Origin: Camelus dromedarius | Lineage: Eukaryota | NCBI RefSeq assembly: GCF_036321535.1 | Contig: NC_087462.1 | Coordinates: forward strand, 6,138,001-6,202,000 | Reading direction: 5' to 3' | DNA length: 64,000 nucleotides | Shown: one piece after another, positions 25,880-55,987 of the stretch | How the letters are laid out: every line of letters starts with the position of its first letter | How positions within the stretch are numbered: position 1 is the stretch's first letter | Translations under genes and position numbers: made by a program | Notes under the pieces: model-generated | The model's input: the letters and a program-made list of their open reading frames with translations, nothing else | Databases searched by the model: none | Told to the model about the DNA's origin: nothing

Positions 25880-28490
25880 TGCACACTCTTCTAGTGATAT
25901 TTGCTTTTTATAGCAGTTTTCAAAATTAAATATTCATTATAGCTATAAATCTTTTCAGTTTTGGATAGGTAATATTGACATAGACATTGAAATGTTTCCC
26001 TCCTGTGTCCCTCAGCCACCACTCGTCCCCTCCCTGGGAGACACCCAGTGTCGTCTGGTTTCCTGTTTTGACTTCCAGAGACATTTTTATCCAGATACAA
26101 GGAAATCTATACACATATTATATTTTCTCATTTTCCCCTTATTTTTCTTTATATATATTTTATACTTTCCCATCTTTGTTTTCTATTTTTTTCTTTTTTG
26201 TGTATTTTTAATTTTGAATTCTATTTTCTATTTTCCCATCTTTTGCAAAAATAATAGTCTGGGCTACTATAGAGAGCTCTAGACTATATCCTTGCTATTT
26301 TTTTTTTTCCCATGTAATAGGTCTTTGGGGTGGTCCCATATAGCCAGGCCAACTGTGTTTCCTCTTCTTATGGTCATGTTTTAGCCCATTATTCAGATGT
26401 CATCAGTGTTTGCTCCCTGCTGGGGTTCATGCAGTCATTGCTCATCCTTTGCCAAGCCCATGCTGCTGCCGCCGTGAATAACCGTATGTGCACGTCATTT
26501 CACCCATGTTCAAGGGCATCAGTAGGACAGATACCCAATGGGAATAGCTGCTTGCACCATCTAACCTGGTAATTTAAGAAAGTCCTTGCCACTAGAATAT
26601 ATTTTGATAGTTGATAGGGCAGGTCTTTCCTTATTCTTTTTGCAAAATTATCTTGGCTTGTTCTTGGGCAACCACTTTTGAAAAACCTTTATTATGGACA
26701 ATTTCAAACATATTCAAAACTAGGGAGAATAACGTAATGAACCTACACTGAACCAACAGTCAGCATCAACAGTTTCCAGCACCCATGGCCAACCTCGTTT
26801 CAACTTGACCCCCACCACAGGATCACTTTGAAGCAAATCCCAGACAGCATAGCATTTCGTCTGTAAAAACTTTGATAGATATCTTGAAAGATACCACCAC
26901 AAACAATAACTACAATGTCATGATCACAACTAAAAAGTTTAACAATAATTCTTCAATATCGTTGTATAGCTTGTGTTTAGAAATTTCTCCGATGGTCTCT
27001 TCTAGATTTGGTGTTTGTTTGTTTACAGTTTCTTCAAATAAAAATCTAAGCAAGATGCATGCACTGCCTTTGGTTGGAGACAGGCTCCTTTAAGTTCTGG
27101 GTTCCTCTTCTCCTTTTTCCCCTTTGCAACATATTTGTTGAAGAATCTAGGCTGTGTGTCCTGCTGACTTGACCAGTCTGATGCCATCCTTGTGGTGAAG
27201 TTTAACCCATTCCTCTGTCCTCAAGTTGGCCAATCTAGGGTCAGAGTCCATGTCCAGTTTTTGGCAAGTCTATTTCACAAAAGGCATTGGGTCCTCTCAG
27301 CAGGAGGCACTCAGGGTCTGCTTATCCCTCCTTTGGTGGCACAAGCCACCACCCAGATCCATCAAGGATGCACTTTACATTTTCTAAATTTTTATTCCAA
27401 AAAAATTGCAAACAGAAAAGTTGTAGGAAGAGTACAGTGTATAGATTCCACAATCACCATGTTGCTAAATTTATTTATCATACTGTATCTCCCCATCTAT
27501 CTATCCATTCCTCCGCCTATCCATTAATCCATCTCACGTTTTGGATACAAATCAAAATAGGTGGGTGTCACTTTATTTTATTATGGTGAAATATACATAA
27601 AATAAATTTTTACCATTTTAACCCTTTTAAAATGGTTTAAGTATACAATTCAGTGGCTTTAAATACATTCACAATATCCTATAATCAACATCATTATCTA
27701 TTTACAGAACTTTTTCATCTTCCCAAAAAAGAAACTGTCCCCATTAAATATTAACTCCCCATTCCCCACTCCCCCTAGCCTCTGGTCCCCATCCTTCTAC
27801 TTCCTCTATGAATTTGCCTTTCTAGGGACCTCACGTAAGTGGAATATTTGTCCTTTTGTGTCTGGCTTATTTCACTTAACATAATGTTTTCAAGATTCAG
27901 GGCTGCATAATTTTCCATTATATGGCTACACCACATTTTGTTTATCCAATCTTCTGTTGATGGACAGAATTTGGCTGGCTTCCACCTTTCNNNNNNNNNN
28001 NNNNNNNNNNNNNNNNNNNNNNNNNNNNNNNNNNNNNNNNNNNNNNNNNNNNNNNNNNNNNNNNNNNNNNNNNNNNNNNNNNNNNNNNNNNNNNNNNNNN
28101 NNNNNNNNNNNNNNNNNNNNNNNNNNNNNNNNNNNNNNNNNNNNNNNNNNNNNNNNNNNNNNNNNNNNNNNNNNNNNNNNNNNNGGTTCCGTTTCTCCAC
28201 ATTCTCGCCAGCACTTGCTACCTTCTGTTTTGTTTTGTGTTTTTGTTAGCAGCCATCCTAACAGGTGTGAAGCGCTATCTCATTGTGGTGTTGATTTGCA
28301 TTTCCCTAATGGCCTGTGATGTTGAACATCTTCTCGTGAGTTTATTGGCCATTTGTACAGCTTCTTTGGCAAAATATTTACTAGAGTCCTTTGCCTATTT
28401 TTGAATTGGGCTTGTTGTTGTTGAGTTGTAGGAGTTTTTTATAATCTGGACATTAATTTCTTGTCAGATATACTATTTATAAATAATTTT
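25880..28490 (-). mobile_element. Nested cluster of old L1 fragments (L1ME/L1MC/L1MB-like) between TYK2 and ICAM3
   Basis: AT-rich antisense L1 3' text (TTTATTATGGACAATTTCAAACA; GTATACAATTCAGTGGC; TTGATTTGCATTTCCC). Contains gap 27991-28184. Confidence 0.75.
27991..28184. other. Assembly gap (194 N)
   Basis: N run inside an L1 fragment. Confidence 1.
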
Positions 28491-35407: not shown

Positions 35408-35547
35408 NNNNNNNNNNNNNNNNNNNNNNNNNNNNNNNNNNNNNNNNNNNNNNNNNNNNNNNNNNNNNNNNNNNNNNNNNNNNNNNNNNNNNNNNNNNNN
35501 NNNNNNNNNNNNNNNNNNNNNNNNNNNNNNNNNNNNNNNNNNNNNNN
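35408..35547. other. Assembly gap (140 N) covering the RAVER1 start
   Basis: N run. Confidence 1.
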
Positions 35548-44500: not shown

Positions 44501-47500
44501 TGGATGTGACTGACAGTAACTGACAGAAGGTGAGGTTGTGGGCTTGGGCCCTTGTGTGGCTGAGAGTGATTCAGCCCACGTGTGGTGTTACTCACTGGGT
44601 GTCTGCAATCAACACGGTGTTGTGAGGGTTAGACACTGTGCTTCTTTGATAACAAGGGGGCTTGGGGTGGGGTGGTGGGTGCCGAAGAAGGACTGTCACT
44701 GTGTGTCTTCTGACAATGTGGGGTGACATGCTCCAACACTCTGTGCATTCATAATCTGTGTTCCCTGGGTCTCCCCAGCACCTCAAGCAGGCCCTGGGGT
44801 GTAGGAGGCCCTTCGTCACCACTGGCCAGGTGGGTGATGGCCGGTGTGTTGCAGACGTTGACACCTTTCATGTCTGCCTGTGGTTGGTTGTGGGCTGGAG
44901 TCTGGGTGTGCTGGGCATTGTGACCCACTGCCCTCATCTCCAGCTGATTGGGCTCTGTCCCTAGAAACCCGGGATCCTGGGAGACTCTCCTCTGGGCACC
45001 CTCCAGCCTGGGGCCCAGCCGGCCAACCCCCTCCTTGGGGAACTGTCTGCAGGTAATGCCTACCCCACTCTTCCCCCACCTCTGGGCCCTGTCCCACTTC
45101 CCTTTCCTGAGCCCCTTTCCTCACTAGGTGTGGTAAACTCCCAGCTGTGCAGCCTTGGGCAGGTGACCTAATCTCTCTGAGTCTCAGCGTCCTCACTTGT
45201 CCGTTGAGTGCCTAGGTGCCCACCTCCCGGAGAAGCCATGAGCATCCTGGGAGCTGATGCACTTAGAGGGCTCTCCTCTGTGTTCAGCATGTACTTGCCC
45301 TTTAGCTGCTGGACCTGGTCCACGTGGAGGCTCTAGGGCCCTGGGAGGATGTTCCTGTGTGGCTGGGCCACTGACACCTTCCCTCTCTCTGTAGGAGGGG
45401 GCCTGCCCCCAGAGCTGCCGCCCCGGCGAGGGAAGCCACCACCCCTGCTGCCGCCACTACTTGGCCCCTCTGGGGGTGACCGGGAAACCATGGGCCTAGG
45501 TCCCCCAGCACCCCAGCTCACTCCACCCCCTGCCCCTATGGGGCTTCGAGGTACTGGCCTCAGAGGCCTCCAGAAGGACAGTGGGCCGCTGCCAACGCCC
45601 CCTGGGGTAAGGCCCTACACTGCACCCAGCACCATTCCAGTCTTCTGCCCTGCGAGGTACCCCCTACCTGGGGCCCTCGTGAGTCTGGCCCTCTCACCAC
45701 AGGTCTCACTGCTGGGGGAACCCCCCAAGGACTNNNNNNNNNNNNNNNNNNNNNNNNNNNNNNNNNNNNNNNNNNNNNNNNNNNNNNNNNNNNNNNNNNN
45801 NNNNNNNNNNNNNNNNNNNNNNNNNNNNNNNNNNNNNNNNNNNNNNNNNNNNNNNNNNNNNNNNNCCCCAGCCCCCGGAAGTGGTGGCAGCAGCAAAGCC
45901 TTCCCGCTCAAGTCCCGCCTGCTCAGCCCCCTCACCAGCACCCGCCTGCCACCTGAACCAGGGCTGCCCGACAGTTATGGCTTTGACTACCCCTCGGTGA
46001 GTAACTGGCCGCCCTGTGGGGAGCCCTCCCAGGGACTAGCTGCTGTGGCCCTTTGTCCCCTGGGAGCAAGTCGTTGTCCAGACCGATATTTCTCTAGTAC
46101 TGGCTGCCAGGCAGGGCGCTAGGGAGACAGCGGGGAACGTGTCAGACACGGTTGCTGCCCTTAAGTCTCTGTCTGTCTCTCTGCATCAGACCCTGCTTCC
46201 TGTCAGTTGTCTTTCTCTCCTGAGAGGCCTTAGGCCACACTTCTGCTTCCCCTTAGAGACAGGGTTCAGCCTCCTTTCTGTCTCTCTGTCTTCCTCCCTG
46301 CTCTCCCCTCTGCGATTCCTGTCCCTGTCCCTGCAGAGCTGCTCCTTCTGTGATTCCAGCTTCCTCTAGGTCAGAGATTGCAGCCTCGCCACCTGTATTA
46401 CGTTTGGCCCAAACTAGATTAAGGAAAAAAAAAACGAATAGAAGCCAGTGCCAACATACAGAACCTGCAAGAGTTTGCACAACCTAGATGCCCAGCTTGC
46501 CTCGAAAACTCCAAACCCTTGGCCCCATCGGGGCCACACACCTTCACAGCAGTCATCTCTGGGGCTGAGGTGCAGCCACCCCCTGGGATGGGGCACCTAT
46601 TCTGTCTCATTGCCCGACCCTGCAGGCTGAGTGGGCTCTTATGCACTGTGTCTATTGGAGGGGGCTGACTTCCCTGATGACAACTGTGCTGTGGAATTGA
46701 GTCAGGGGTGAAGTTGGTTACCGACCCCAACCCAACATGCTGCTTCTCCCACTTTCATTCAGGATGTGGGACCTCGACGGCTCTTCTCCCACCCACGGGA
46801 GCCAACCCTAGGGCCTCACGGACCCAGCCGACACAAAGTAATTGCTGCCCTGTCCATCCCACCACCTGAGTGTTAGCTTTTGCTGCATAACAAGCAGTCC
46901 CATTACTTCATGGCTTGGAACAGCAAACATTTGATTGTTTCTCATCATTCTGTGGGGTGGTGGGTGGGTGGTTGTCTGCAGTCACCTGGCAGTTCAGCTG
47001 CAGCTCAGTGGTCCATGGTGGCTTCTTTCATTTGTCTGGTGGTCAGTAGGCTGGTGAAGGGGCCTCGGCTGCAAGGACTTACCTGCTCCATATGGGGCTT
47101 ATCCTCCAGCAGGCCAACCTGTGCTCCTGCATGTGGTGGTGGTTCCAGAGGTCCCTGGAGGAGGAAGGGAGGGTGGACCCCTCTGCTGGCATTGTCATAC
47201 TCCTATCCCATTGGTCAAAGCCTGGAATTGTTTGGGGATCTATGAAAGGAGATAGTACTGCAGCGATCCATCTTACTCAGCCAGCTCTCTCTCTGCAGAT
47301 GTCCCCCCCACCCAGTGGCTTTGGCGAACGGGGTGGCGGAGGTGGCGGCGGGCCGCTCTCCCACTTCTATTCGGGCTCACCCACCTCCTACTTCACTAGC
47401 GGCCTGCAGGCTGGCCTCAAGCAGAGCCACCTTAACAAGGTGAGGAGCCTCCCCAGCCCACTGCAGGTCCTCAGGGACAGCCAAGATGCAGGGGGCCCCT

Positions 47501-49612: not shown

Positions 49613-53017
<3,405 letters not shown>

Positions 53018-53270: not shown

Positions 53271-53276
53271 AATAAA
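53271..53276 (+). terminator. FDX2: FDX2 polyadenylation signal AATAAA
   Basis: First AATAAA, about 250 nt after the stop. Confidence 0.8.
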
Positions 53277-53779
53277 ACTGTCTCACAGACCTCCAGCATC
53301 TTGAATGTCCTTATGAGGAAGGTGGGGACAGAGGGGCGGGCCCTGGGGTCTACAACTGCATCTCCCATACCCCCAGCCTTCCTCTTCCACAACGGTTTTG
53401 GGCCAGCAGGAAACAGGCAGAGGCCTGAAGGTGAAGGCCCGAGAGCCTGAAGATCAGCGTGGCAAGACTCCGCCCCGCAGCGCGGAGGGATTTGGAGGGC
53501 TCCAGGCCGCCCTTGGCCACAAGGGGTGTGCAAGCCCCCTGAGCAGAGTCAGGGGAGGGGGAAAGGGACAGAGGCTGGCCCGAGAGTGGGGGGTTGGAAG
53601 CCGGTGCCCAACATCGTCCACCAGAGGCGCCCGATCCCACAGGCGCCGCCCCACTCAGGTGGTGCTCCTTGCACCCTCCGCCAAAAGCGCCCCCGCCCCA
53701 CGCAGGTGAAGCTCATCCGGTGGGACTGGCGTGGGCGGGGCAGGGCGAGATTTGGGAAGGGGGCCTGGGCTGGGGTGCA

Positions 53780-55987
53780 ATGGAGGCTGAGCCAGTCCCG
53801 GACTTCATGCTGCGAGAGCTGCTGGCGCCACGCTGTCTAGACCCCGAGCTGCCCCCGGAACCCCGGGCCCAGCGGGCACCGAGGACTCCTGGATGCCTCA
53901 GACCCAGTGGCAGGTACGTTAAGGAGCGGCCCTTCCCCCAACCTGGTCCAGTGGTCAAGGGATCATGACCTCTGGCTCCTGGGGTTATCCAGGGGTCAAA
54001 ATGTTAGTTACTGGTACTGACAAGGAAGAGGGCCTCGTCCCCAGGGATACTTGGGGTCATATGGGGGTCAGAGGCTATGCCATTCTCCTTGCCTTGTTCC
54101 GTATCTCTGAGACCCAAGTAGGTGCTGCTCGGGGAAGGGGCTGACCACACTGCCCCTTGTCTCCAGGTCCTTCTGGCCTGCACACCAGGATTCAGTCACT
54201 GCACTGCGCTTCCTCCAAGAGACAGCAGAGGGGCTGGCCCAGCCTCCCACGTGGGACACCCAGGCCCTGGGGCCCTGCTGGGAGCTGAAGGCCCTGGGGA
54301 CCCTGGGACCCCCTCCTCTGGCCAGGGATGCCAAGAACATGCTGACCCCAATCAGCCAGCAGTGCCACAGCCCAGGGACTCCCCCGGCCTCTTCAGCTCA
54401 GCCACAGAGGAGGCCCCGGAAGCAGTTGAACCCCCAGAGGGGCTCAGAGAAAGTGGACCCCCAGTTCGAAGGGGTGACCCTGAAGTTTCAGATAAAGCCG
54501 GATGCCAGCCTCCAGATCATACCCAGCTACAGGTAGGGGCCAGCCTGGGCAAGGGCACCCTTTATGCAAGTAATGATAAAAGCACAGAGGCCTGGGAACA
54601 GGTGCTCCCAGCATCTGCTCAAGGACTCCTATGCCAGCCCTGCATTACAGACAGCCCCGACTCTAAGCAAGACATCAGGCTGGTGCCAGTCCCTGTCCCT
54701 GCTGCTGGAGACCAGTCACATCCAGGTCCAAGTGCAGGTCTCCTCCTAATGAAATAGTCTGACAGTACCCAGGGCTGCTGCTGTGGTAGATTTTTCCAGT
54801 AATGATAATAGCAACCATTTGTCAGACAGGACAACAACCATACGAGATATCGGAGCACTTGACGTCTATGGGCTCTCTGAAGCCTGGGGAAGCCCACTTT
54901 ACAGGTGCAGAAACTGAGGTGTAGAGGGTGCGATCACTTGTCCAGGGTCACAAAGTGAGGACTTGGGAGAACTGAGCTTTCAACCTGGCAGGTTGGCTCC
55001 AGACTTATTACCTCTTCACATGATTATGATTGTGATTACCAATGAGGGGCCAGGCCTTTCAGACGTCAGATGCCTCCTCGGGGACTGCCCAATACCCTGG
55101 CAGGACATACTCATTTGCGGGCTGTCTGGGGCAGGGTACAGACGTCCTGATGCTAACGCCTGTCTACTCCCCCAGCCTGGCTTGCAGCAGCCGCTCTCAG
55201 GGTGCCCCGACTGGCCCTGCCGGGGGCCCAGAGGCCAACCTGCGAGGCAGCGAGGCCCTGGGTAAGTCCTGGAGACTTGAGAGCTATAAATATTTGGGGG
55301 AGGGTATGGTTTCCTTTCCTCCTTATCTTTCTTCCCAACCTGCTTCCCTATTTAGACCCATCCAGGAGGAGTCACAGCGCCCCCCTCCACTCAGGCTGAG
55401 TCACCCCCACCCCCAGCTTCCTCCTCTGCCGAGCTTTGCCATCTGTCTCCCTTCCTGGCTTTCCCTATGTCTTAGATCTGGCCTAGGGCTGGGTGGGGCC
55501 TTTACAGAGGACCCCCCCCCCGAAAATGCCCACCCTACCCGACACAGGCCTCCTGAGCTTGGACTCTTGGCCTCTGACCCCTGCCCTTTGGCTTATGCCC
55601 TTTCAGGGCCCCGACGCTGTGCTTCCTGTAGGACCCAAAGGACCCCACTCTGGAGAGATGCTGAAGATGGGACCCCTCTCTGCAATGCCTGTGGAATCAG
55701 GTCCTCAAAAGAGAGGAGGGAATTGGGGTGGGGTGACATCAGTCCCTGCTTAGCCAGTGAGGAGTAGTGGGAAGAGAAAACACCCACCTCTTGGGGAAAG
55801 TGGCTCCCTGGTGGTGATTTCCAGGCTGAATGTGGGTTTCTTGCACCCCCACCCCAGGTACAAGAAATACGGCACTCGGTGCTCTAGCTGCTGGCTGGTG
55901 CCCCGGAAAAGTGTCCAGCCCAAGAGGCTATGTGGCCGATGTGGAGTGTCGCTGGGCCCCCACCCAGTCCCAACTCAGGAAGGGTAA
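53780..55987 (+). CDS. ZGLP1: GATA-type zinc finger protein 1 (GLP-1), 269 aa
   Basis: Exons 53780-53913, 54167-54532, 55176-55261, 55607-55700, 55858-55987; 810 nt, open frame. Contains RRPRKQLNP, the GATA finger CASCRTQRTPLWRDAEDGTPLCNACGIRYKKYG and a second CSSC..CGRC cluster. The first exon resembles recalled mouse Zglp1 (MEA...ELLAPxCLD). Confidence 0.93.

Follow-up and report, generated by a model that had tools for sequence, protein, structure and literature searches.

In the 64,000-nucleotide stretch of the dromedary genome analysed here (Camelus dromedarius, contig NC_087462.1, positions 6,138,001 to 6,202,000; the window in what follows), the first intron of ZGLP1 contains a non-coding element that evolves clearly more slowly than the neighbouring non-coding DNA across orders. 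Within this element, which to judge from the alignments is genuinely constrained, lies a perfect direct repeat of the nuclear-receptor half-site RGKTCA with a spacer of 5 nt (DR5). The motif, its position, its retention in orthologous introns and the slow evolution of both the element and its half-sites were observed directly. We tentatively propose, at somewhat less than an even chance, that the element is a promoter-proximal docking module for nuclear receptors that would tune ZGLP1 transcription in germ cells, with the retinoic acid (RA) receptors RAR/RXR giving the best motif fit. The gene and motif features on which this proposal rests are as follows, in coordinates of the window:

53780..53913, plus strand: ZGLP1 coding exon 1, with the ATG at 53780 (translation and tblastn)
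53914..54166, plus strand: ZGLP1 intron 1, 253 nt, GT..AG
53914..54080: conserved non-coding part of intron 1, ~170 nt (identity and parsimony), which aligns to Pongo, Saimiri and Trichechus
53952..53971: element E1, TGGTCA-ag-GGATCA abutting TGACCT, an imperfect DR2 and an imperfect inverted repeat without spacer (IR0)
53982..53998, plus strand: element E2, GGGTTA-tccag-GGGTCA, DR5-like with one variant half-site
54054..54070, plus strand: element E3, the perfect DR5 GGGTCA-tatgg-GGGTCA (GGGTCATATGGGGGTCA, GGGTCAtatggGGGTCA), an exact match to RGKTCA-N5-RGKTCA

The preliminary description of this DNA had placed a DR5 at 54054-54070 in a 253-nt ZGLP1 intron 1, and both the letters themselves and the protein-to-genome alignment confirm it: GGGTCAtatggGGGTCA has the two half-sites, the direct orientation and the 5-nt spacer that define a DR5 RA response element (RARE). 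The DR5 starts ~275 bp downstream of the ZGLP1 start codon, and the conserved element ~135 bp downstream of it. The same description listed four further half-sites, two of which, TGACCT (53966) and GGGTCA (53993), fit RGKTCA, while TGGTCA (53952) and GGATCA (53960) carry one mismatch each. In the camel, the IR0 part of E1 (GGATCA/TGACCT) likewise departs from the perfect palindrome by one mismatch.

As a raw motif, the DR5 does not exceed chance for a window of 64 kb. The window holds 179 half-sites, which matches expectation, and two strict DR5s where 0.26-0.33 are expected; a cluster of at least four half-sites within 105 nt arises in 88 of 300 shuffles. Only with the 253-nt intron fixed beforehand does the motif become rare (24 of 20,000 shuffles), that choice of intron being post hoc. 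The only other strict DR5 of the window is GGTTCAgtgtaGGTTCA, at 26738-26754 on the minus strand. It is conservation, not motif counting, that appears to lift the intronic DR5 above chance.

To follow the motif across mammals, ZGLP1 loci including introns were collected from 12 species (~99 kb in total) and intron 1 was aligned; the sample is made up of laurasiatherians, two primates, Mus for Glires and one afrotherian. The state of E3, and any other strict pair within the element, is as follows:

Camelus ferus: strict DR5 at E3; no other strict pair
Vicugna: strict DR5 at E3, spacer tgtgg; no other strict pair
Phacochoerus: strict DR5 at E3; no other strict pair
Bos indicus: strict DR5 at E3; no other strict pair
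Panthera leo: strict DR5 at E3; no other strict pair
Trichechus (Afrotheria): strict DR5 at E3, spacer tgtgg; no other strict pair
Phocoena: both halves of E3 GAGTCA; no other strict pair
Equus: first half of E3 GGGTCT; perfect DR5 GGGTCAtcccgGGGTCA at E2 (equivalent to window 53982-53998)
Molossus: 1-nt deletion in E3, second half TGGTCA; no other strict pair
Pongo: second half of E3 GGATCA; perfect IR0 GGGTCATGACCT at E1 (equivalent to window 53960-53971)
Saimiri: second half of E3 GGATCA, spacer of 6; perfect IR0 GGGTCATGACCT at E1
Mus: intron 1 of 562 nt, alignable only at the 3' splice region and with no strict half-site; no other strict pair

The strict DR5 is thus retained at the orthologous place in 6 of the 12 species, one afrotherian among them, and its presence in Vicugna, Phacochoerus, Bos, Panthera and Trichechus disposes of the possibility, left open by the preliminary description, that it is confined to camelids. 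Its conservation in mammals is nevertheless partial: the motif is kept in half of the species and sits in a slowly evolving stretch, but it is degraded in both primates and gone in the mouse. Since orthologous copies occur in Laurasiatheria and in Trichechus, it is most parsimonious to place the DR5 in the ancestor shared by Laurasiatheria and Afrotheria, with several later degradations; it probably predates the placental radiation. Three of the species with a degraded E3 (Equus, Pongo and Saimiri) carry a perfect pair nearby, the primate IR0 lying 90 bp upstream of the DR5 site, a pattern that suggests turnover with maintenance. In each 7-9 kb locus of the DR5-keeping species, E3 is the only strict DR1, DR2, DR5 or IR0 pair, and over the ~99 kb of all loci nearly all such pairs fall within the intron element, those outside being one DR2 (Saimiri) and one DR1 (Pongo). 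The 9.6-kb mouse Zglp1 locus has no strict DR1, DR2, DR5 or IR0 pair. A 33-nt degenerate anchor taken upstream of the DR5 (E2 plus the adjoining block, 53982-54014) gave no match in one scan of metagenome contigs. In Phocoena, the same G-to-A change is found in both DR5 half-sites, in parallel in the two copies of an 11-bp repeat.

The rate of change was measured by counting parsimony steps per site on a seven-species tree:

Strict half-sites: 0.42 steps per site, the slowest part of the element
DR5 spacer: 0.80 steps per site
Rest of the element: 0.79 steps per site
Middle of intron 1: 1.32 steps per site
Intron 2: 1.20 steps per site
FDX2 3' untranslated region and intergenic DNA: 1.12 steps per site
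ZGLP1 coding exons: 0.66-0.72 steps per site

The first ~170 nt of the intron (0.4-0.8 steps per site) are therefore as slow as the coding exons of ZGLP1, against 1.12-1.20 in neighbouring non-coding DNA. Identity gives a similar picture: on average 0.84 of the six non-camelid laurasiatherians are identical per site in the element, compared with 0.82-0.85 in exons, 0.71-0.75 in intron 2, 0.73-0.74 in intergenic DNA and ~0.78 over the whole locus across Laurasiatheria. Random sets of four background hexamers were as slow as the half-sites in 52 of 20,000 draws (p about 0.003), and the DR5 hexamers and their spacing, kept in three of the six laurasiatherians, rank in the top 3.2% of non-coding 17-mers of the locus. 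The hexamers and spacing of E2 are retained in five of the six. Two other parts of the element stand out:

53992..54020: the most conserved block of the intron, GGGGTCAAAATGTTAGTTACTGG... (GGGGTCAAAATGTTAGTT...; the AATGTTAGTTACTGG block), by 17-mer retention and invariant columns
54038..54047: palindrome TCCCCAGGGA, conserved in most laurasiatherians

For the 17-mers that begin at 53992 and at 53993, the hexamer pairs (12 of 17 positions) and the spacing are preserved in all six laurasiatherians, so that this block, and not the DR5, is the best-kept part of the intron; it is largely kept in the manatee and rewritten in primates. The palindrome is altered in Phacochoerus and primates and deleted in Trichechus. 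It may be EBF-like (with an TCCCNNGGGA core), and the CATATG that overlaps the DR5 spacer is presumably an E-box; both are leads, as is the AATGTTAGTTACTGG block.

Slow evolution of this kind could in principle come from RNA structure or from an alternative exon that is translated, which we regard as extremely improbable. RNAalifold does return a consensus fold of -24.8 kcal/mol, but its covariation term is unfavourable (+2.3), double changes occur in only 4 of 33 pairs, and the intron has no Rfam match; with neither covariation nor an Rfam match behind it, a structured RNA was rejected. A coding or retained intron was rejected on account of 1-nt indels in Vicugna and Molossus and of an in-frame stop after exon 1. 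We also considered a repeat origin, presumably from a MIR (mammalian-wide interspersed repeat) or the head of a tRNA-type short interspersed element; a blastn search with the intron gave no paralogous match within the 64-kb window, which leaves the idea unsupported rather than excluded.

The conserved ~170 bp, which occupy the 5' two-thirds of intron 1, combine the half-site pairs E1, E2 and E3 with other conserved blocks; nuclear receptors would dock on E1-E3 and adjust ZGLP1 transcription in germ cells, and RAR/RXR would be the occupant that best matches the motif grammar of DR5, DR2 and IR0. Such a module was probably in place in the placental ancestor. Horse and primates would later have reshaped it, it would have decayed in the porpoise and the bat, and the mouse would no longer have it. 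DR1, DR2 and DR5 arrangements of RGKTCA constitute the grammar of RAR/RXR (PMC1785376). Where RAR/RXR bind in vivo, several RARE-type motifs are typically found together, and IR0 is accepted among the non-canonical RAREs (PMC4446430); the several half-site pairs of the camel intron appear to fit this architecture. If functional, the element would be a conventional RARE or nuclear-receptor element near the promoter rather than a new kind of system, and the claim of an "undescribed regulatory system" in the preliminary description was overstated.

Because RGKTCA repeats are common to many receptors (PMC1785376), the occupant is not nameable from sequence, and the element may be a nuclear-receptor module without being an RA sensor. 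Its occupants would then be orphan or other receptors, for example repressors outside the germ line or RA-independent activators, with COUP-TF/NR2F, TR2/TR4 (NR2C), GCNF (NR6A1) and, on IR0, the thyroid hormone receptor as candidates. The evidence from conservation and clustering is identical to that for an RA-responsive module, and neither the reviews nor a preprint citing the mouse work describe an RA dependence of ZGLP1. On the other hand, DR5, DR2 and IR0 make up the classical RAR/RXR set of spacings, and the camel element contains no DR0, DR1 or extended monomer site. We consider a module of this RA-independent type improbable.

Several lines of evidence weigh against a docking module for nuclear receptors: (i) at least one DR5 arises in 71 of 300 dinucleotide-shuffled windows (24%), and the human genome contains 5,786 consensus DR5s (PMC1785376); (ii) the strict DR5 has decayed or disappeared in Phocoena, Equus, Molossus, anthropoid primates and Mus, which make up 5 of the ~10 independent lineages; (iii) when compared with hexamers within the element, the half-sites are not significantly slow, as 2,085 of 20,000 were equally so (p about 0.10); (iv) TCAGAG, immediately after the second half-site of the DR5, varies no more than the half-sites do and is unchanged in all 12 aligned sequences, so that the constraint is not cleanly half-site-shaped; (v) the intron contains nine runs of three or more G in its 253 nt, and all four plus-strand half-sites begin in such a run; (vi) a 2026 preprint citing Nagaoka et al. 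places mouse ZGLP1 under bone morphogenetic protein (BMP) rather than RA; and (vii) receptor binding, RAR/RXR as the receptor and an effect on ZGLP1 expression are all matters that we infer.

The first two of these points would be expected if the DR5 had no function and were either a chance match or the remnant of an old 11-bp duplication, kept in the slow lineages of a compact, gene-dense and well-conserved locus. The half-sites and their flanks can indeed be read as an 11-bp tandem repeat (GGGGTCAtatg / GGGGTCAgagg), and the whole locus aligns well across Laurasiatheria. What this does not account for is that Trichechus, Panthera, Bos, Phacochoerus and the camelids all preserve the spacing and every one of the 12 half-site positions, far above the non-coding background by both of the comparisons given above, nor that the element changes at ~60-65% of the rate of flanking non-coding DNA. 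On balance, an absence of function seems quite improbable.

Points (iii) to (v) bear on a serious rival, namely that the DR5 is a by-product: the 5' part of the intron would be conserved for G-run splicing enhancers, for other factors (the block 53992-54020 and the TCCCCAGGGA palindrome being candidates for their sites) or for both, and the DR5 would be an incidental reading of GGGGTCA repeats. G-runs act in the splicing of short introns (hnRNP H/F type). In our alignment most runs are kept, and their conservation is about equal to that of the half-sites, which in turn show no significant slowing relative to the rest of the element; moreover, the DR5 explains neither the best-conserved block nor the invariant TCAGAG flank. 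Against this, (i) conservation is equally strong for the TCA of the half-sites and for the G-runs; (ii) perfect receptor-type pairs were regained nearby in horse and primates, which a pure G-run model does not predict; (iii) the DR5 spacer changes about twice as fast as the half-sites (0.80 versus 0.42, on small numbers); and (iv) the fixed 11-bp register is left unexplained. We therefore hold the by-product explanation to be unlikely, though far from negligible.

Reviews describe ZGLP1 as BMP-dependent or BMP-controlled (PMC9604137; PMC11555627), and Zglp1 is reduced in germ-cell Bmpr1a knockouts (PMC11829761). Since the mouse lacks the element, mouse data placing the gene under BMP and not RA neither test nor support it, and bear on it only indirectly. 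For the same reason, the RA-receptor motifs predicted in silico in mouse peaks of transposase-accessible chromatin (ATAC) linked to Zglp1, reported in a multiome study (eLife 2025, PMC11893106), cannot be this element and must be other, looser or more distant motifs; that study shares with ours the gene and the idea of RA receptors acting on it directly, whereas the mouse locus is without strict pairs. In pig and human fetal ovary, ZGLP1 is switched on together with STRA8 in "RA-responsive oogonia", which is co-expression and not induction, and in the pig its window of expression is longer than in mouse or human (PMC13655266; PMC13050328). Our literature search found no paper on a RARE in ZGLP1 intron 1 or on RAR/RXR occupancy there.

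The preliminary description had further joined the DR5 to a Smad-type element ~210 bp away as a "BMP+RA integrator". The motif itself is where it was said to be:

53824..53842, plus strand: composite GGCGCC-N5-GTCT of the Smad/BMP response element type, in exon 1, 212 bp upstream of the DR5

The Smad-type motif is present in 9 of 13 sequences, the mouse included, and absent in Bos, Phacochoerus, Molossus and Saimiri. Camelus, Vicugna, Panthera and Trichechus have both it and the DR5; Bos and Phacochoerus have the DR5 alone; Phocoena, Equus, Pongo and Mus have the Smad-type motif alone; and Molossus and Saimiri have neither. The two motifs are thus kept or lost independently across the 12 species, and the integrator idea gains nothing from co-retention.

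Set beside known systems, the ZGLP1 element shares with canonical DR5 RAREs, such as those of RARB, CYP26A1 and HOXA1, two direct RGKTCA half-sites, a 5-nt spacer, a position near a promoter and the company of further half-site pairs. It differs from them in that both of its half-sites are GGGTCA, in that it is known here from sequence alone, and in its absence from the mouse and degradation in primates; the classical RAREs show deep conservation that extends to both mouse and human. The perfect GGGTCATGACCT at E1 of Pongo and Saimiri is like the IR0 palindromes, which are a non-canonical RARE (PMC4446430) and also of thyroid-hormone-receptor type, and unlike the camel E1 with its one mismatch. 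With G-run intronic splicing enhancers, the element has in common nine G-runs in a 253-nt intron, conserved across orders, but not the conserved TCA, the 11-bp register or the regained pairs in horse and primates. In Alu-borne DR2 RAREs (Laperriere et al. 2007, PMC1785376), receptor direct repeats were created by or carried in repeated DNA; the ZGLP1 element, in contrast, shows no sign of repeat origin (no paralogue in the 64-kb window) and predates primates.

In mice, ZGLP1 determines oogenic fate, and it is a bottleneck for the production of oocytes in vitro; its upstream control is known only as "BMP-responsive", almost only from the mouse. If the docking module is real, a receptor-type module that is ancient and yet missing in the mouse would sit beside its promoter, and the mouse would be a poor guide for livestock and possibly for primates; the 170-bp element would offer a concrete target for study in pig or cattle germ-cell models. 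A wider scenario, to which we assign a low probability, is that ZGLP1 was a direct RA target through the intronic module in the placental ancestor and is so in many non-rodent mammals, with BMP and RA converging on it, and that the two-arm state of the mouse (BMP to ZGLP1, RA to STRA8) was derived by loss of the module. If true, this would account for the status of ZGLP1 as a marker of "RA-responsive oogonia" in pig and human. The main interest lies in the species contrast, in which the element would be ancient in placentals, absent in the mouse and remodelled in primates, so that a rodent-specific simplification becomes testable. Should the element prove inert, it would serve as a caution that a DR5, even when perfect and fairly well conserved, says little about RA control.

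The exon 2 peptide matches only mammalian "GATA-type zinc finger protein 1", the gene being the ZGLP1 orthologue, and the exon 1/exon 2 junction (...LRPSGR/SFWPAHQ...) agrees with the NCBI Vicugna protein P0070 in the protein-to-genome alignment. Exon borders were taken from tblastn searches of the window with the ZGLP1 proteins of Vicugna, Camelus, Phacochoerus and Bos, and positions 53600-54560 are 99.9% identical to Camelus ferus. The remaining features of this part of the gene are:

54140..54166, plus strand: splicing signals at the 3' end of intron 1, namely a CTGAC resembling a branch point, the pyrimidine tract and the 3' splice site (0.38 parsimony steps per site, from the alignment)
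54167..54533, plus strand: ZGLP1 coding exon 2 (protein-to-genome alignment)

Conservation at the 3' end of intron 1 is accounted for by these splicing signals and needs no receptor site. The Bos indicus protein P0024 has 12 additional residues at the exon 1/2 junction, which imply that an alternative 3' splice site lies within intron 1, ~38 nt further upstream (window ~54129). The Camelus ferus protein P0121 ("hypothetical protein CB1_000418011") follows ZGLP1 exons 1-3 and then runs out of frame, without the GATA finger, and looks like a faulty 3' exon model rather than a real isoform.

FDX2 lies just upstream of ZGLP1, with its last coding part at 52871-53017 and an AATAAA at 53271, which leaves only ~490 bp before the start codon for the ZGLP1 promoter region. 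Read-through or fusion products of FDX2 and ZGLP1 are annotated in other species; the Ictidomys protein P0009 is named as a ferredoxin-2 variant and yet aligns to ZGLP1, and the Antechinus protein P0159 combines Fer2 and GATA domains. Downstream, an ICAM-family gene (ICAM_N and Ig domains) is placed tail-to-tail with ZGLP1 in the Camelus ferus locus (L003, 5667-7507, minus strand), an arrangement consistent with the order FDX2-ZGLP1-ICAM that we take to hold at the human locus. Runs of N occupy 27991-28184, 35408-35547 and 45734-45865 of the window, 466 bases in total.

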